Source of the DNA: Selaginella moellendorffii
Lineage: Eukaryota; Plantae; Lycopodiophyta
Direction of reading: 5' to 3'
Assembly: GCF_000143415.4 (NCBI RefSeq)
Contig: NW_003314619.1
Coordinates: forward strand, 1 to 9,009
DNA length: 9,009 bases
Under the pieces are notes generated by a model. The model saw only the letters and a list, made by a program, of their open reading frames with translations. It was not told where the DNA came from and ran no database searches. The first letter of the stretch is position 1; each line of letters opens with the position of its first letter. Both the position numbers and the translations under genes were made by a program. Positions 1 through 9,009 of this stretch are shown one piece after another.

Positions 1-2117
1 TTGTACAAGCAATTCATGAGCAATCAACACACAGACTGGGATGTGTTTAGGTGCCTCCACCATATAATGGGTGTGGTTGGATTCCCGGGTGCGGGAAAAA
101 CATCATTTGGCAAGGCACTCCCACAAATACTCATTGAGATGAGAAGGCAACAGAGTGATCCAGGGCTAAGGATTCAACAACTTGCCTCGCTTTTCGATAC
201 ATCAATCGATGAGGTGCGACCGTGGGATGCCATGATGAGCACCGTTGAACATCTCGACGTGGTCATGTACCATGATTTTATTTCAACTTTCATTGGCGAG
301 GCCGGGCTGGGTGATGCTCAGGTTTTGGCCCTGAGGACTTTGCATGCAGCTGTTTCTAGAGCAGATGGCCAAGATAACATCAGAAAAGATACTGGGACTT
401 GGACGTGTTTTTTTTACCAAGAGCTTGTCGCTGTTGTTGATGCCAAAGCACCTGATTTGAAGAAGTTCCTCCTGTTTGATGACGTGATAGCTTTGTTGCG
501 AGAAGTCTGCGAGCTCGGAGACCAAAACATTTTCCTGTCGTTCTTCTTTGATGAGATTGGGAGGAACAACGTCCTTGTTCAGAAAGTGTTTCGGGAGTTC
601 ATAGTTTGGAAGTACAGCAACGTGGGTGGCAAAACGTTTGTCACTATGCTCGGAGCGACCAACCTTTTCACAGCGGCATCTTTGAGAGAGAGCGGTGACA
701 CTGGATCATCTGAAGTGATTTATATTCCTGTCAACCCTCTCAGCAGCAGCGATCGGGAGAAGCTGGTGTTGCAAGTCTTTAACAAGGTGCTGAGGACTTC
801 AAACCGTGAAGAACTTCACGCTTTAAATGATGGCATGCAGCTGTTGTGCAAGCTGAGCGGAGGGAATCCGAGGTTGATTACCTTCATGGTTCAGGCTTTG
901 GCTTCAGATGACCCAGACATGGCCCTTGACATTGACAACCTTGCGCTGAGAATTCAGGAGCCCTTCCTGAGAGACAAAGTAAGGCGGATTCTGGATCGTG
1001 TGTGGAGCCTATGCAGAAGATTCGAGTATTACAATGGCTTTGCCGGGGATGAGAGATTTTCTTATTTCTTACGAGCAATTCAAGCATCGATGCTTCGTGA
1101 GCATGTCTCAAGGAATGGACCGGTTCTGCTGCAGGCCTTTCCAAGAGAGAATGTTTTGACATGGGAAGCTCTGGAGAGTTGTGGAGTAGTGGCTGTGGTT
1201 CTTGACGAAGAAAAGGCTCTGGTGGAGTTTTCACCTGTGTTACTGCATAAGCTAACACTCCAGCGGGAGGACTTTTTTGGCTCTACAACTTTTGATTTGA
1301 CAACAATGTCAACGGATGATTGGAAGCAGAAGGAAGACAACGATTTGGTGTCTCTGATCTTCAGCATCTACATTCATAAGGTATGTGAATTCTACGTTCA
1401 TAGTCTTTCATAGTCTCGGTTACTAACATGTTATTTGCAGTTACTATCGGGGGGTTCAGACACCTTCATGCTGGCGGACGTGTTGCCTTGCGATTGGTAC
1501 ATCCCTGACAATCTGAAGAACCGAAAGTTCAGGTTCCCCACTTTTCCAGTTTCAATCAAGCAACTGAGTCCAGGTATGTTCTTGTTTTTAGTTTTTTGGT
1601 TTCGGATCAAACACAGTAGTCCAGGCTCAAAGGAGGAGGTTCAAAGGTCAGGGACTTGGGCCATGTGTGGACCTCGGAACAGCGGGGCTGATACCTTCCT
1701 GATACTCGAGGAAGTAAAAGGCATTGATTTGGAGCCATTTCTTTTGTACATCCAAAGCAAGTGCTCTGGAGACCCCTTAAGCCAGCCATTGCGGATTGGT
1801 CGGAAGTCGTTCGAAATGTTAAGAGTGACGTCCGAAGACTGATTGCTATCAAGGACAATGAGCAGCCTGGCGATGAAAGTAAGTCCATACGTTATACATT
1901 TTTTGTTTATTTTTAATTTATGTTTTTTGTAGAGTATGCTCGAACGAACTTTGGATACGTATTTTTCTCGGACAAGGACAATTCATCAGCTCTCTCATAT
2001 CAAAAGTCTAATCCGATGGATATATACGCCTCGAGTGTTATTATCGGCTCCAATTTTGGTATGATCGAGCAGATTGCAGCTGTAAGGCATACCAAAAAGT
2101 GTACGAGAGAGATGTGA
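1..2117 (+). CDS. 5'-partial spliced gene: STAND-like P-loop NTPase + C-terminal restriction-endonuclease-fold domain (Crinkler/RHS-type). This copy is frameshifted at ~1773-1776. Exons <1-1380, 1441-1573, 1625-1878, 1933-2117
   Basis: Walker A GFPGAGKT (79-102), Walker B FFFDE (541-555), helical-domain GGNPR (859-873), and GADTF...LLYIQSK resembling a D...QxK REase active site (1684-1761). Three GT-AG introns join the ORF pieces. A C4 run here versus C5 in the other arm shifts the frame to an early TGA at 1840-1842. Confidence 0.75.
1381..1440 (+). other. Spliceosomal intron, 60 nt (mirror 7500-7559 on -)
   Basis: AAG|GTATGT donor, TACTAAC branch point at 1421-1427, TTTGCAG| acceptor. Phase 0; removal deletes the TAG at 1411-1413 and fuses two ORFs in frame. 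Confidence 0.92.
1574..1624 (+). other. Probable spliceosomal intron, 51 nt, in frame with no stop (mirror 7316-7366 on -)
   Basis: CAG|GTATGT donor, T-rich interior, CCAG| acceptor. This is the only nearby AG that keeps the frame. Confidence 0.7.
1879..1932 (+). other. Spliceosomal intron, 54 nt (mirror 7007-7060 on -)
   Basis: GTAAGT donor, AT-rich body, TTTTTTGTAG acceptor. Joins exon 3 (intact-copy frame) to the YARTNFGY... exon. Confidence 0.88.
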
Positions 2118-3154
2118 TCACCAGTATTTAGTGGTAAAGGAGGCTTTCCAGGTGCGATTCAGCTAGACTTTGATACCAAGAGAGTCTTATGATTCTGGTT
2201 TTCCTTTGGTAGGTGACTGGATTCTCTATTGGTGACAGTAAGGGAAACGGCATAGATAATGTGTTGATGTTGAGTGCACAACAATCCATATTTAAGTTTA
2301 TTTAAGAAATTTAGTTTAAAAAGTCATAATTATTATTATTTCAGTTATTTTAAATTCATGTATAGTCATATATAGTAAATCCATACATATGTATTTAGCC
2401 TGAGCTTAGGTGTCTCTCTTAAAACATTTCCTTCTCTTCTGTTTGATTATTTACAAGCAGCCATGTAAGTACTTCATTTGATTGATATCTTTTAGATTTC
2501 TTGCTCTTATAGTTGGCATATTAAATTACGTCCACGGATGTAACAAAGTTTCCCTTTTGACCGTTGAATTTTTGTCAAAAGTTCCAAAGTGGAATGGTTA
2601 TATCAATAGAAGTTGAGACTACTCGAGAATAAGTAGTGGGATTGAGATAGAGGAAGAGTCTCAAACAAGTTTAGCGAGAACTAAACCAATGAAAGGGAGA
2701 GAACCACCACAGGTGGTCGATCGAGTCTTTATGTTAAAGAGACCATGCTTCTTGGAGGATGGACAACACATAATGAGCCTTCAGTGTCAAACTATTGACA
2801 AATATTGGCTAGGTGCCAAGGATGGAAAGGGTAATACATGCTAGTATTACTTTATAAAATAATTTATCGTTCAATGAAGACATTGAACTTCATCTATAGG
2901 TGGTGGAGTTGTGAGACACAAATCCCTAAGCCCCAAAGTGGAGCCAAAAGGGTGCCATATGGTAGTGGTTAAAGCGAGAGCCAAATAAGCGTAACATGTT
3001 TGAACTAAAAGCTCCAACTTGAAAGGTTGAGAGTGGGAGTGGAACTCCCAACGAAGTGCTTGAGGAACAAGCATGAAGTGAGCAATAAGTGAGTCTCTAG
3101 AAAAGGGACACAAGAGGACCAACACATGACATATGAAAGTGTCCGGCACCGAGC

Positions 3155-3166
3155 TAGGGTTAGGGT
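3155..3166 (+). repeat. Short G-strand telomere-like tract TAGGGTTAGGGT
   Basis: Two TAGGGT units just upstream of the hammerhead, opposite in polarity to the CCCTAAA array. Short, so it could be chance. Confidence 0.4.
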
Positions 3167-3173
3167 AAACACT

Positions 3174-3231
3174 AGACGACTACACCCAGCTGATGAGTCC
3201 CAAAAAGGACGAAACCGGTCTCGGGTTGTCT
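3174..3231 (+). ncRNA. Type I hammerhead ribozyme (minimal, PLE-type)
   Basis: Core CTGATGA 3190-3196; stem II GTCC/GGAC (3197-3200/3207-3210) with loop CAAAAA; GAAA 3211-3214; very short palindromic stem III ACCGGT 3214-3219; GTC cleavage triplet 3218-3220; stem I ACCCAG/TCGGGT (one G-U, one mismatch) plus distal AGACGAC/GTTGTCT (the two helices overlap at 3225-3226). Confidence 0.93.
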
Positions 3232-3390
3232 CTTGTCCTCTCCCTCGCTCACGAATGAATGAAAATTCATTCCCTCGCCTCCTCTACTTGCTCTCGATCA
3301 CGCCGTTTCGACAACGGCACACGGAGAATGTGGATTGCACAAAGTGGTGTCGCGATCTCGCCGGATTGCAGCACCGCAGGGTGTCTTTGA

Positions 3391-3535
3391 CCCTAAACGC
3401 CTAAACGCGCCTAAATCCTAAACCCTAAACACTAAACCCTAAACCGGGGTGTCTTTGACCCTAAACACAGCAAGCGCCTAAATGTGCCTAAACCCTAAAC
3501 CTAAAACCCTAAACCCTAAACCCTAAACCCTAAAC
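3391..3535 (+). repeat. Interstitial Arabidopsis-type telomeric repeat array (CCCTAAA)n, partly degenerate
   Basis: Many CCCTAAA units with variants (CGCCTAAA, TCCTAAA, CACTAAA, CCTAAAA), four perfect tandem units at 3507-3534, interrupted by GGGGTGTCTTTGA. Confidence 0.95.
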
Positions 3536-3625
3536 TGGATCGCCGAAGACAGTAAGCATTCTTCTGGCAGGTGATGTACCTTTGACGCAAGATAACTTGT
3601 GAACGTGGCATGATATGAGAATCGA

Positions 3626-5394
3626 GTGGAGACTGGAGCCGTACACAACCTCTTGAGCAGGGCTCTTTCGGCTGCCAAGATCCGCCTCCTCTCCCTCGGC
3701 CTGAGGTACATCCCGAACCCGGCACCGCTCAGAGCCCCACAGATCGTGGAAAGCTCTGACGCTCTCTGCCGAGCCGTCCGACTCTGTCACCTCTTCAAGG
3801 ACGACGACTCAGCCCTGCCGGAGTTCCGAGTACCGAACCCGAGCTTCCAGCACCAGCGCATGTGGAACGGCGCCTTGCACACGTGTGAGGCAGCCTGCTC
3901 CACAGGCTGGAAGGAGCACACAAGCCTCGCTCCTTTGCTCATGGTTGGAAAAAGTGTGCTCTCCACTCTCTCGCAATGGACACATCCATCGTCATCAAGC
4001 CTGCGGACAAAAATCTTGGAACGGTGGTGCTGGATCACGATTGGTACACGAAGGAGGCTCTCCGCCAACTGAACGTCCCACTCATTTATGTGAAGGTCCC
4101 CTCCATGCCATCCAAATCCCTCCAGGAACGCCTCGCCGAGCTCATCACAAAGTACCGCAGCTGCTCGTGGCTCGACAACTCCACGCAGCAGTTCCTGCTG
4201 CACCAGCCCGCCGTACCCTGGCAGGCTTGCATGCTGTATTTTCTTCCGAAAATACACAAGCAGCCAATAAAGGGCCGGCCCATTGCGAGCTACATTGGGA
4301 CTTTGTGGGAGCCTCTCGCGCGTTGGCTTCACCGCCAGCTCTACGACATCCTGCTGAAGCAGCCAACGTTTCTTTCCGACTTGCGCATGCTGCTGCAGGA
4401 CCTCCTCCACCTATAGCTCCCGTGGGACTGCTGGCTCTTCACGTTCGATGTAGAGAGCCTCTACCCAAGCATCCCCACACGAGAAGGTCTCCAACGCCTC
4501 CGCGACTTTGTGTTTGCCGAGTACGGCAACACCACAAGCTTGCGGTTCCTCATGGCTGCGGCTGCCCTCGTCCTGGAGCACAACTATGTGGAGTTCGACA
4601 GTAACATCTACCAGCAGATCCGTGGCACAGCAATGGGCTCCAACTTCGAGGTGGTCTACGCTTGCCTCTTCCTCTGCTCTCTCGAAGCCGAGTACAAGCA
4701 TGCCACCAACGACTGGCCCTTCTATCTACGAAGGTACATAAATGACGGAGTGGGCATTTGGACAGGTACACGAGCAGGTCTCGAACGATGGCTCCGAGGA
4801 TACAGCACGCTGTGTCCTTCGATCAAGATCACCTCGGTGATCTCGCTCGAAGAGTTGGATATCCTCGATATCCACTTCTTCAAAGGCCCTCGCTTTGAAG
4901 AGACAGGCTGCCTCGACTCGTCCACGTTCCAGAAGCCGCTCAATGCCTACCAGTACCTTCCCTGGACGTCGGTTCACCCATGGCACCAGAAAGTGGCATT
5001 CATCCGCAGCGAGCTCCACAGATACCTCCTCCACGAGAGCACGGCCGATGGATTCCACGCCATGCGCACGCGGTTCTACCACCGCCTCCGTGCCCGGGGA
5101 TACCCGATTTCCTTCCTCCATCACTGCTTCTCCGGCATCTCCTACGACCAGCGACATCAAGCTCTCCTCGCAAGTTCGCGCCACTCTAGCGATGCCTGTC
5201 GACAGGCCCCCCTCGCCTTCAAGCTGCCTTACACACTCCACAGTGCGCAGCTAGGCTTGGGGGACATCCTAAACCCTAAACAGGTGATGGATGAAGCTCC
5301 CGCAGACACACTCCCCCGAGTGATTACGTGCTGGAGATGCTCCCCAAACCTCGGTTCTTTCCTGGTAAGGGCTAAGCTCCCTCCGCGAGCCTAG
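3626..5394 (+). pseudogene. Penelope-like reverse transcriptase, disrupted (frameshift ~3850, stops at 3886 and 4414, YIDD>YIND)
   Basis: N-terminal VHNL..RALS....LLSLGLRYIP; IKPADKNLG (PADKNLG at 4000-4020); YFLPKIHK (4237-4260); motif A FTFDVESLYPSIP (4438-4476, just past the TAG and missing from the ORF track); motif B QQIRGTAMG (4612-4638); motif C YIND (4735-4746); thumb FQKP...YLPWTSVHP...K and RLRARGYP; ends NLGSFLVRAKLPPRA*. Confidence 0.93.
5268..5281 (+). repeat. Short telomeric tract CCTAAACCCTAAAC inside the RT coding 3' end
   Basis: Read directly; encodes (I)LNPK(Q) in the RT frame. Confidence 0.7.
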
Positions 5395-5527
5395 CCATGT
5401 CTTGTACCGCACTTTTCAAGACACGGAAGCACATGTTTGCATCCCTCTCCGCGTACCCGATGACTCCCAGGGTCTGGCCAATGGACTTCAGGTATGTCCC
5501 AAGTCACTTCAGGCCACCCCCATCTCG

Positions 5528-5557
5528 AGTCAACGCACGGTCAACGCGTAGTCAACG
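5528..5557 (+). repeat. Three 11-bp-phased RGTCAACG units
   Basis: AGTCAACGCAC-GGTCAACGCGT-AGTCAACG. Confidence 0.7.
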
Positions 5558-5820
5558 GTCAGAATGGAATATTCCCCAATATTCCGACTGTATCCCTGCT
5601 GACCGAGTCAAAACGGAATATACCGTTGGATTCCGCTCTTCCTTCCGATCGTGAATATGTGAGTTTCAACCCTGAACTCCACACACGACTCGTGGAAAAG
5701 CGTGTATTCTGTTAAAATGGTGCCGCTCCCTCGACATCGGCGACACATGCCGACAGCTCGCGGGATGGCTCTCCCCAACGCAACCACTGGACTCCGGGTA
5801 TGTATGAGTGACCTCAGGCC

Positions 5821-5901
5821 CTCCATCTCGGACTCCATCTCGGACTTCATCTCAAGTCCATCTCGGACTCCATTTCGAGTCTATTTCGAACTCCTTCTCG
5901 G
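5821..5901 (+). repeat. 11-12-bp minisatellite (consensus CTCCATCTCGGA, ~7 units)
   Basis: CTCCATCTCGGA x2, CTTCATCTCAAG, TCCATCTCGGA, CTCCATTTCGAG, TCTATTTCGAA, CTCCTTCTCGG; abuts the right-arm breakpoint. Confidence 0.85.
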
Positions 5902-8900
5902 CCCACTCTCAACCTTTCAAGTTGGAGCTTTTAGTTCAAACATGTTACGCTTATTTGGCTCTCGCTTTAACCACTACCATATGGCACCCTTTTAGCTCCA
6001 CTTTGGGGCTTAGGGATTTGTGTCTCACAACTCCACCACCTATAGATGAAGTTCGATGCCTTCATTGAACGATAAATTATTTTATAAAGTAATACTAGCA
6101 TGTATTACCCTTTCCATCCTTGGCACCTAGCCAATATTTGTCAATAGTTTGACACCGAAGGCTCATTATGTGTTGTCCATCCTCCAAGAAGCATGGTCTC
6201 TTTAACATAAAGACTCGATCGACCACCTGTGGTGGTTCTCTCCCTTTCATTGGTTTAGTTCTCGCTAAACTTGTTTGAGACTCTTCCTCTATCTCAATCC
6301 CACTACTTATTCTCGAGTAGTCTCAACTTCTATTGATATAACCATTCCACTTTGGAACTTTTGACAAAAATTCAACGGTCAAAAGGGAAACTTTGTTACA
6401 TCCGTGGACGTAATTTAATATGCCAACTATAAGAGCAAGAAATCTAAAAGATATCAATCAAATGAAGTACTTACATGGCTGCTTGTAAATAATCAAACAG
6501 AAGAGAAGGAAATGTTTTAAGAGAGACACCTAAGCTCAGGCTAAATACATATATATGGATTTACTATATATGACTATACATGAATTTAAAATAACTGAAA
6601 TAATAATAATTATGACTTTTTAAACTAAATTTCTTAAATAAACTTAAATATGGATTGTTGTGCACTCAACGTCAACACATTATCTATGCCGTTTCCCTTA
6701 CTGTCACCAATAGAGAATCCAGTCACCTACCAAAGGAAAACCAGAATCGTAAGACTCTCTTGGTATCAAAGTCTAGCTGAATCGCACCTGGAAAGCCTCC
6801 TTTACCACTAAATACTGGTGATCACATCTCTCTCGTACACTTTTTGGTATGCCTTACAGCTGCAATCTGCTCGATCATACCAAAATTGGAGCCGATAATA
6901 ACACTCGAGGCGTATATATCCATCGGATTAGACTTTTGATATGAGAGAGCTGATGAATTGTCCTTGTCCGAGAAAAATACGTATCCAAAGTTCGTTCGAG
7001 CATACTCTACAAAAAACATAAATTAAAAATAAACAAAAAATGTATAACGTATGGACTTACTTTCATCGCCAGGCTGCTCATTGTCCTTGATAGCAATCAG
7101 TCTTCGGACGTCACTCTTAACATTTCGAACGACTTCCGACCAATCCGCAATGGCTGGCTTAAGGGGGTCTCCAGAGCACTTGCTTTGGATGTACAAAAGA
7201 AATGGCTCCAAATCAATGCCTTTTACTTCCTCGAGTATCAGGAAGGTATCAGCCCCGCTGTTCCGAGGTCCACACATGGCCCAAGTCCCTGACCTTTGAA
7301 CCTCCTCCTTTGAGCCTGGACTACTGTGTTTGATCCGAAACCAAAAAACTAAAAACAAGAACATACCTGGACTCAGTTGCTTGATTGAAACTGGAAAAGT
7401 GGGGAACCTGAACTTTCGGTTCTTCAGATTGTCAGGGATGTACCAATCGCAAGGCAACACGTCCGCCAGCATGAAGGTGTCTGAACCCCCCGATAGTAAC
7501 TGCAAATAACATGTTAGTAACCGAGACTATGAAAGACTATGAACGTAGAATTCACATACCTTATGAATGTAGATGCTGAAGATCAGAGACACCAAATCGT
7601 TGTCTTCCTTCTGCTTCCAATCATCCGTTGACATTGTTGTCAAATCAAAAGTTGTAGAGCCAAAAAAGTCCTCCCGCTGGAGTGTTAGCTTATGCAGTAA
7701 CACAGGTGAAAACTCCACCAGAGCCTTTTCTTCGTCAAGAACCACAGCCACTACTCCACAACTCTCCAGAGCTTCCCATGTCAAAACATTCTCTCTTGGA
7801 AAGGCCTGCAGCAGAACCGGTCCATTCCTTGAGACATGCTCACGAAGCATCGATGCTTGAATTGCTCGTAAGAAATAAGAAAATCTCTCATCCCCGGCAA
7901 AGCCATTGTAATACTCGAATCTTCTGCATAGGCTCCACACACGATCCAGAATCCGCCTTACTTTGTCTCTCAGGAAGGGCTCCTGAATTCTCAGCGCAAG
8001 GTTGTCAATGTCAAGGGCCATGTCTGGGTCATCTGAAGCCAAAGCCTGAACCATGAAGGTAATCAACCTCGGATTCCCTCCGCTCAGCTTGCACAACAGC
8101 TGCATGCCATCATTTAAAGCGTGAAGTTCTTCACGGTTTGAAGTCCTCAGCACCTTGTTAAAGACTTGCAACACCAGCTTCTCCCGATCGCTGCTGCTGA
8201 GAGGGTTGACAGGAATATAAATCACTTCAGATGATCCAGTGTCACCGCTCTCTCTCAAAGATGCCGCTGTGAAAAGGTTGGTCGCTCCGAGCATAGTGAC
8301 AAACGTTTTGCCACCCACGTTGCTGTACTTCCAAACTATGAACTCCCGAAACACTTTCTGAACAAGGACGTTGTTCCTCCCAATCTCATCAAAGAAGAAC
8401 GACAGGAAAATGTTTTGGTCTCCGAGCTCGCAGACTTCTCGCAACAAAGCTATCACGTCATCAAACAGGAGGAACTTCTTCAAATCAGGTGCTTTGGCAT
8501 CAACAACAGCGACAAGCTCTTGGTAAAAAAAACACGTCCAAGTCCCAGTATCTTTTCTGATGTTATCTTGGCCATCTGCTCTAGAAACAGCTGCATGCAA
8601 AGTCCTCAGGGCCAAAACCTGAGCATCACCCAGCCCGGCCTCGCCAATGAAAGTTGAAATAAAATCATGGTACATGACCACGTCGAGATGTTCAACGGTG
8701 CTCATCATGGCATCCCACGGTCGCACCTCATCGATTGATGTATCGAAAAGCGAGGCAAGTTGTTGAATCCTTAGCCCTGGATCACTCTGTTGCCTTCTCA
8801 TCTCAATGAGTATTTGTGGGAGTGCCTTGCCAAATGATGTTTTTCCCGCACCCGGGAATCCAACCACACCCATTATATGGTGGAGGCACCTAAACACATC

Positions 8901-8939
8901 CCAGTCTGTGTGTTGATTGCTCATGAATTGCTTGTACAA
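5902..8939 (-). repeat. Right arm of a large inverted repeat (partner 1-3037; likely extends past 8939)
   Basis: Reverse-complement match to 1-3037. I found 7 transitions and one 1-bp indel by eye. Confidence 0.98.
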
Positions 8940-9009
8940 CAGCCAGTTACCCCTGAGCAATGCATCCACAGTCTTCTCTCGTCCAACAATGGGAAACTGC
9001 TGCCCGATG
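6822..9009 (-). CDS. 5'-partial spliced gene, apparently intact copy: STAND-like NTPase + REase-fold domain (Crinkler/RHS-type). Exons >9009-7560, 7499-7367, 7315-7061, 7006-6822
   Basis: The frame is open to the window edge (IGQQFPIVGREKTVDALL..., with the hhGRE motif that typically precedes Walker A in STAND/AAA-type NTPases). Same motifs as the left copy. After splicing it reads without interruption ...SGDPLKPAIADW...PGDE-K-YARTNFGYVFFSDK... to the TGA ending at 6822. Confidence 0.8.

Follow-up and report, generated by a model that had tools for sequence, protein, structure and literature searches.

We analyzed a 9,009-nucleotide (nt) stretch of the genome of the lycophyte Selaginella moellendorffii (NCBI RefSeq assembly GCF_000143415.4, contig NW_003314619.1, positions 1 to 9,009 of the forward strand), referred to here as the window. 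At its centre lie remnants of Penelope-like elements (PLEs), with a reverse transcriptase (RT) gene among them. Read along the + strand, this centre begins with a hammerhead ribozyme, which is followed by C-strand telomere repeats, (CCCTAAA)n, and then by a broken PLE RT gene; on both sides it is enclosed by host DNA that forms a large inverted repeat. The 2.86-kb centre has a G+C content of 52–62%, compared with 27–50% in the arms. We consider it very probable that the segment from 3123 to 5825 derives from a chain of endonuclease-deficient (EN-less) PLEs arranged head to tail, of which it is a decayed part.

The ribozyme is a type I hammerhead at 3184–3226 on the + strand. It matched Rfam family RF00163 with 38.4 bits (E 5.5e-07), above the curated gathering score of 34, and the conserved core CUGAUGA ... 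GAAA ... GUC is present. The GUC triplet occupies 3218–3220, and cleavage is predicted after C3220. Helix I extends over 3178–3230 with an internal loop. Helix III consists only of the palindrome ACCGGU; it is unable to form a closed hairpin but can pair with a second copy. As expected with a helix III of 2 bp, the minimum-energy fold of the monomer did not yield the active hammerhead fold. For comparison we used three S. moellendorffii loci that encode intact proteins of 580 amino acids (aa), designated L001, L002 and L003. Five related hammerheads were found in these loci, all on the RT strand and each scoring 40.5 bits against RF00163; at 3188 the window has undergone a G-to-A change, which disrupts one base pair of helix I and is absent from all five.

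The telomere repeats comprise nine exact copies of CCCTAAA within 3391–3534 and one more at 5274–5280, all on the + strand; about 0.96 copies would be expected in the whole window, and none of 200 shuffles reached ten. Tandem Repeats Finder detected period-7 arrays at 3390–3445 and 3487–3535, as well as a two-copy 70-nt unit at 3379–3515. The first repeat begins 170 nt past the cut site.

Together, the ribozyme and the first array fall within a segment at 3123–3445 (+ strand) that we annotate as chain member 1, a 5'-truncated PLE 3' tail module. It consists of a leader, the hammerhead and hairpins at 3253–3272, 3302–3318 and ~3344–3377, and it ends with GGGTGTCTTTGA (3379–3390) and degenerate C-strand repeats encoded by the element (3391–3445). 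The predicted fold of this module has a z score of -3.65, and its sequence is 96% identical to tails that follow an RT and its 3' untranslated region (3'UTR) in L001 and L002. Chain member 2 (3446–3536, + strand) is an extremely 5'-truncated tail copy that begins just 12 nt ahead of its repeats, with GGGTGTCTTTGA and degenerate repeats followed by perfect CCCTAAA repeats. Comparable mini-tails with variable 5' ends lie between arrays in L002 (8962–9366) and L003 (8000–8138). In L001, two different PLE tails are interrupted at the same spot, in the last hairpin, by 1.64-kb inserts (4786–6425 and 12233–13874) that are 99.6% identical to one another and are flanked by a target duplication of ~16–19 nt (ATCTCGCCGGATTGCA); the first of these, the only one scanned, contains a single ORF (open reading frame), of 107 aa.

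The rest of the centre belongs to chain member 3, the main part of which is an EN-less Penelope-like RT pseudogene (3608–5394, + strand, with its stop codon at 5392–5394). Pieces at 3976–5394 (frame 1) and 3626–~3860 (frame 2) are 58–67% identical to residues 2–578 of XP_024523476 (P0004), an annotated 580-aa S. moellendorffii protein that ends two residues past the LPP with which the window ORF closes; the homology takes in the N-terminal PLE motifs and the thumb. The copy lacks an ATG at the equivalent of the P0004 start (~3662), is frameshifted between ~3860 and 3948, has a TAG at 4414–4416 where P0004 has Gln, and reads YIND in place of the catalytic YIDD (4735–4746), owing to AAT at 4741–4743. 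With these lesions, the RT copy in the window is dead. The point lesions that we typed (3188, 4414, 4741 and the seven differences between the arms described below) are all G-to-A or C-to-T, as would be expected if methylated cytosines had been deaminated in silenced repeats.

Both ends of chain member 3 are abnormal. Its 3'UTR (5395–5825, + strand) is 94% identical to L001 3806–4182 and to L002 838–1213 and 7626–8001. The matches in L001 and L002 run on into a tail module, and the window 3'UTR is cut off at 5825, where it is joined straight to a 12-mer satellite via the shared letters CTCCA (5821–5825). The RT copy is thus left with no hammerhead, tail or telomere repeats of its own. Such a junction could result from priming on an end that had no telomere repeats or, alternatively, from a deletion at a later time. 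At the 5' junction, 3537–3610 (+ strand) is filler, an inverted copy of the segment that separates 3'UTR and hammerhead in canonical copies; it shows 88–90% identity, on the opposite strand, to L001 4323–4404 and to L002 1354–1435 and 8142–8223. This inverted piece of 74–82 nt, placed between the telomere repeats and the 5'-truncated RT, begins within the loop of a small hairpin that reads CTTCGGCG-ATC-CGCCGAAG in canonical copies. The filler, a single example, could record a snap-back, or the insertion of filler DNA, when the 5' junction formed.

The absence of a GIY-YIG endonuclease is consistent across several searches. Six GIY-YIG-bearing relatives, used as tblastn queries against the window and the ~56 kb of related loci L001–L003, aligned through their RT parts only, and PF01541 was absent from the nearest ~100 relatives. 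Pfam identified no family on the three broken RT pieces taken alone or on the flanking ORFs, and a sequence search of the PDB returned chance matches only. In precomputed annotations, homologues numbering in the thousands carry the Pfam families DUF8422, RVT_1 and HTH_animal, with RVT_1 weak on P0004. All three of the intact 580-aa proteins have the same C-terminal end point as the window ORF, and we therefore conclude that the family is truly endonuclease-less rather than truncated in the window alone.

In a quick tree, built without TERT and without references for the named clades, the window RT and P0004 are sisters and group with proteins of Ginkgo and Cryptomeria in a plant clade that is EN-less. 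A branch with 100% support splits the EN-less clade from GIY-YIG-bearing relatives, and an RT from Puccinia lies on the EN-less side. Close EN-less relatives occur in Ginkgo and Closterium too. Distant EN-less relatives with 36–45% identity form head-to-tail units in three metagenome contigs (L004–L006), where an ORF1 of 455 aa is combined with an RT of 623 aa at a period of ~4.95 kb, and in Cryptomeria japonica, where two genes for 626-aa RTs lie 4.33 kb apart. No Rfam hammerhead was found in L004–L006, and no telomere-type array in L004, the one contig of the three that was scanned for tandem repeats.

Much of what an initial annotation of this DNA had proposed is borne out by these results. 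It had called a hammerhead cut after 3220, a (CCCTAAA)n array ~170 nt behind the cut and a PLE RT ending with no GIY-YIG on either side, and each of these features lies where it was placed. It had also assigned the locus to the EN-deficient, telomere-associated PLEs, which agrees with intact relatives that have no GIY-YIG domain, that carry both the ribozyme and telomeric repeats, and that in one case form a chain at a scaffold-end telomere.

The arrangement of the parts is best read from the related loci. All five related copies (one in L001, three in L002 and one in L003) have the order RT, 3'UTR, hammerhead, 157–170 nt, C-strand repeats. Once in L001 and twice in L002, sequence 85–94% identical to window 4705–5825, which spans the RT C-terminus and the 3'UTR, is followed ~370 nt later by sequence 96% identical to window 3145–3426, which carries the hammerhead and the three hairpins and reaches into the C-strand repeats. 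L002 and L003 have intact RTs of a different subfamily, with 67% identity to the window, and there the stop codon is followed by ~860 nt, a hammerhead, ~157–160 nt and arrays. L003 8139–11547 is an intact full-length copy that starts right behind an array and has a 590-nt 5'UTR; no hammerhead was found within this 5'UTR or just upstream of it. Because the module stands behind the RT in five of five related copies, and because the intact L003 copy has no hammerhead upstream, we conclude from these alignments that hammerhead and array are the family's 3' tail module, which in the window belongs to a separate, 5'-truncated copy upstream of the RT. The initial annotation had asked whether the array keeps its position among copies: its distance behind the hammerhead is indeed constant, at 157–170 nt, and the place it keeps is behind the RT, not before it.

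The same succession of hammerhead, arrays and RT that is seen in the window recurs in L002, where a hammerhead at 8416–8458 is followed by arrays to 9366 and by an intact RT from 9964. Here the upstream tail is of the window subfamily (94–96% identical to the window) and the downstream RT is of the other (67%), and the two are therefore neighbours in a chain, not one unit. L002 is the end of a 658-kb scaffold and opens with ~360 nt of (CCCTAAA)n, which the 5' ends of all three of its chain members face. A telomere-like motif of two units, CCTAAACCCTAAAC, lies inside the RT ORF of the window at 5267–5280, where it codes for LNPK, and is kept in the RT ORF of both subfamilies (L001 11616–11629, L002 11579–11592 and L003 10344–10357). 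At L002 330–365, the terminal telomere tract of the scaffold leads directly into a copy truncated exactly at this motif, which hints that a cDNA ending there can act as a ready telomere seed.

These features place the centre of the window, as a decayed fragment, among the endonuclease-deficient, telomere-attaching PLEs of the Coprina/Athena kind, a class already published for S. moellendorffii. Both the family and chain member 1 carry reverse-complement telomeric repeats 3'-terminally on the sense strand, and the RT copy has lost its tail; location at a chromosome end is seen for L002, and the window copy sits between inverted host arms. Athena and Coprina elements are reported to attach to G-rich overhangs, aided by reverse-complement telomeric repeats with adjacent hammerheads, and the hammerheads are drawn near the 3' ends (PMC8557442). 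Type I hammerheads are described in flanking repeats of S. moellendorffii PLEs (PMC4209133), and spikemoss PLEs are named as the plant example in PMC12477314.

The mechanism that we propose for the family is taken from this literature and in part inferred, and what we observed ourselves is the order of parts, the hammerhead-array spacing, the chain form, the terminal telomere of L002 and the missing nuclease. The RNA of an element would terminate in C-strand repeats and would anneal through them to the TTTAGGG 3' overhang at the end of a chromosome; the RT would then extend the overhang with no need for a nuclease. The 5' end, in many cases truncated, would be capped by telomerase before a further element landed on top, such that a chain read along its sense strand would run array, element, array, element. 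The hammerhead is part of the 3' module, fixed 157–170 nt ahead of the terminal repeats. Applied to the window, 3123–3445 would be the tail of a later, strongly 5'-truncated addition, 3446–3536 a still shorter tail addition with telomerase repeats, and 3537–5825 an older RT copy. A ribozyme block of ~62 nt is invariant in the two subfamilies, except for window position 3188, and their flanks no longer align; because the block has stayed identical while the flanks diverged, it is under strong constraint in the family. As for its role, our best guess is that paired ribozymes would trim multi-unit read-through transcripts of a chain to unit length, with the palindromic helix III letting two of them pair.

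The window as a whole is dominated by the inverted repeat around this centre, in which 1–1776 and 7164–8939 are 100% identical and 1773–3037 and 5902–7166 are 99% identical. The left arm (1–3037, + strand) contains a multi-exon host gene, an AT-rich spacer and a subtelomere-type repeat at its inner end; the right arm (5902–8939, - strand) holds the same gene and spacer reversed, and there the gene runs on to 9009. The gene is of a P-loop-like family, its exon 1 ends at ~1380, and the translated exon 1 shares 93–95% of its residues with LOC9637151 of S. moellendorffii and with a paralogue. Only the left arm has an inner extension (3038–3122, + strand), comprising ~65 nt of subtelomeric sequence that the right arm does not have and then a short, degenerate stretch of 12-mer satellite; it is homologous to L001 16233–16315 reversed. 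On the right, the 12-mer subtelomeric satellite itself, with the unit CTCCATCTCGGA, occupies 5821–5901 (+ strand), and the same satellite lies beside arm-like sequence in L001 (15757–16464). Because in L001 the satellite and arm-like sequence come after a chain of PLEs, the right half of the window resembles what would be met on moving inwards from the tip of a normal chromosome end. At ~3120/3123 the left arm meets the sense strand of the chain, in an orientation that misfits telomere-primed addition. The arms show no differences in the outer 1776 nt and seven transitions clustered in the inner 1261 nt, and a 1-nt indel in a C run at 1776 shifts the frame of the left gene copy; to judge by this comparison, the two arms are distinct copies. 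We rejected simple fold-back copying of one arm from the other as the origin of the palindrome, given that the left arm keeps ~65 nt missing on the right. The palindrome could be a real head-to-head fusion or a fold-back relic, or a mis-join of two haplotype ends. Exact-protein look-ups with window ORFs that cross the junctions, and with the RT piece, turned up no contig of independent origin. Six sequencing runs, guessed to be RNA, contain 7–18% of sampled words from 2900–6050, a range that takes in arm, satellite and retroelement together.

Several points weigh against the chain interpretation of the centre. The evidence comes from three related loci of one assembly, and an intact 5' end was found in no other copy of the window RT subfamily. 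No second full-length copy of this subfamily turned up, and a search for closer Selaginella RT fragments, within a limited length range, was negative. The segment 3537–3610 may be a short native 5'UTR. The RT copy also has no 3' tail, which the model requires, and the outer junctions at 3120/3123 and 5825 are non-canonical, so that later rearrangement or unusual priming has to be assumed. The initial annotation had instead combined hammerhead, array and RT into one transcript, in which cleavage after 3220 would free an RNA whose CCCUAAA 5' leader serves as template or anchor in cis. All three parts do lie on one strand, the same adjacency exists in L002, and a chain transcribed by read-through and cleaved by the upstream ribozyme would yield RNA of exactly this form. 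We nevertheless regard a single unit as highly improbable, given that the module is at the 3' end in every related copy, that the intact L003 copy does without an upstream hammerhead, and that tail and downstream RT in L002 differ in subfamily. The distance from array to start codon also varies, from ~126 nt in the window to ~590–600 nt in the intact copies, and the retro-copied tails, the window's included, cross the cut site uncut; thus, making the template does not require cleavage. Moreover, because reverse transcription proceeds toward the 5' end of the RNA, priming on a 5'-proximal tract would copy just the 170-nt leader and not the RT. A template in cis as a new telomerase-like arrangement accordingly gives way to the published PLE model, in which the tract is at the 3' end, and the suggestion that family and layout might be undescribed is superseded by earlier reports of the class, in this species, and of its ribozyme (PMC8557442, PMC4209133, PMC12477314). 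The distinction between 5' and 3' arrays would cease to matter if the template were a circular RNA, cut on both sides by paired hammerheads and joined by a tRNA-ligase-type enzyme as in retrozymes, on which the overhang could prime anywhere on the array. A helix III that suits two-ribozyme pairing and a ribozyme block invariant between subfamilies would both accord with this, and PMC5680766 ties PLE hammerheads to retrozyme circles and notes tandem hammerhead sequences in S. moellendorffii. We give it a very slim chance: the members of the chains come from different subfamilies and are truncated at different 5' positions, which marks them as separate events and not as products of a rolling circle, and genomic structure alone cannot tell a linear from a circular template.

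A further question is whether the palindromic setting of the chain is real. Background to this is that the S. moellendorffii assembly holds both haplotypes. The join of left arm and retroelement at ~3120/3123, and with it the palindrome, may be an artefact, either of a chimeric clone or of two haplotype chromosome ends wrongly joined in the assembly, a possibility to which we assign somewhat less than an even chance. The arms differ as two alleles would, with seven transitions, one indel and a one-sided stretch of 65 nt, and the orientation of the retroelement fits the right arm only. An end-to-end mis-join through telomeres would, however, need a telomere tract, of which the join has none, and differences that are all transitions and cluster in the inner 1.26 kb also fit a real, slightly diverged palindrome. 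If the structure is genuine, the palindrome centre might preserve the history of one chromosome end. The end may have broken or eroded into the 12-mer satellite, with its telomere repeats gone; the PLE RT may then have primed at the internal 5-nt microhomology (CTCCA, 5825) and not via a telomeric tail; a 5' snap-back or filler event (3537–3610) may have been followed by capping by telomerase and two tail additions; and a later head-to-head fusion with a second uncapped copy of the same subtelomere may have produced a true palindrome. Taken jointly, we consider this succession of steps unlikely.

The analysis is chiefly of value as a correction. Wherever telomere-attaching retroelements form chains, each copy is preceded by the tail of its neighbour, and a "cassette" of ribozyme, array and RT is therefore expected and does not amount to a new telomerase-like design. 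Of modest use are the ribozyme block that stays invariant across subfamilies with flanks diverged past recognition, and the conserved two-unit telomere-like motif in the RT coding region, exactly where a real terminal telomere begins in one related locus. The non-canonical junctions hint that such RTs also act at ends stripped of telomere repeats. We conclude that the locus is a dead, rearranged relic, and that only these junctions and the palindrome might repay a further look.

Endonuclease-independent insertion is known for L1 elements, and 5' inversions and filler DNA are known at retrotransposon junctions. Priming at a free DNA end through the CTCCA microhomology at 5825, as may have happened here, and the inverted 74–82-nt piece at 3537–3610 would be reminiscent of such events; the RT here is of another class, and the window is a single example of this putative mechanism. 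With telomerase (TERT and its template RNA) the family shares a related RT lineage and what would be nuclease-free extension of a G overhang on a C-strand RNA template; it differs in that a PLE has no separate short template RNA or cycle of repeat addition, the whole element RNA being copied once. The Chlamys PLE-X elements, which are EN-less and occur in Selaginella, target 28S rDNA, have a CxC...C motif and mostly do without a canonical hammerhead (PMC8557442), whereas the copies described here lie among telomeric repeats and bear hammerheads; no rRNA match was found by Rfam in the window or in L001–L003. The core and helix II with its loop in the window hammerhead are nearly identical to the RF00163 consensus, a Schistosoma-type motif. 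In its position within a repeat flanking the RT ORF it resembles the S. moellendorffii PLE hammerheads of Cervera and De la Pena 2014 (PMC4209133); that account calls the Selaginella motifs canonical, whereas the window has only ACCGGU for helix III and a helix I pair broken by a G-to-A change.

Terminons, as presented in PMC12477314 and PMC8557442, share with the elements described here an Athena-type RT, C-rich RNA 3' repeats beside a hammerhead, and long telomeric chains, at times with host genes between units. They differ in being giant units of bdelloid rotifers, which can reach 40 kb and more and hold numerous additional ORFs, compared with ~3.4 kb and a single ORF here. The closest likeness in kind is to Coprina and Athena. 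In the descriptions of these elements in PMC8557442 and PMC12477314, as here, a PLE-type RT without GIY-YIG is combined with 3' reverse-complement telomeric repeats and an adjoining hammerhead, and the elements, those of S. moellendorffii included, form chains with their 5' ends toward the chromosome end, in the same host species. Against that description, the window copy stands out as dead, stripped of its tail, bounded by non-canonical junctions and lodged between inverted host DNA instead of at a visible chromosome end.

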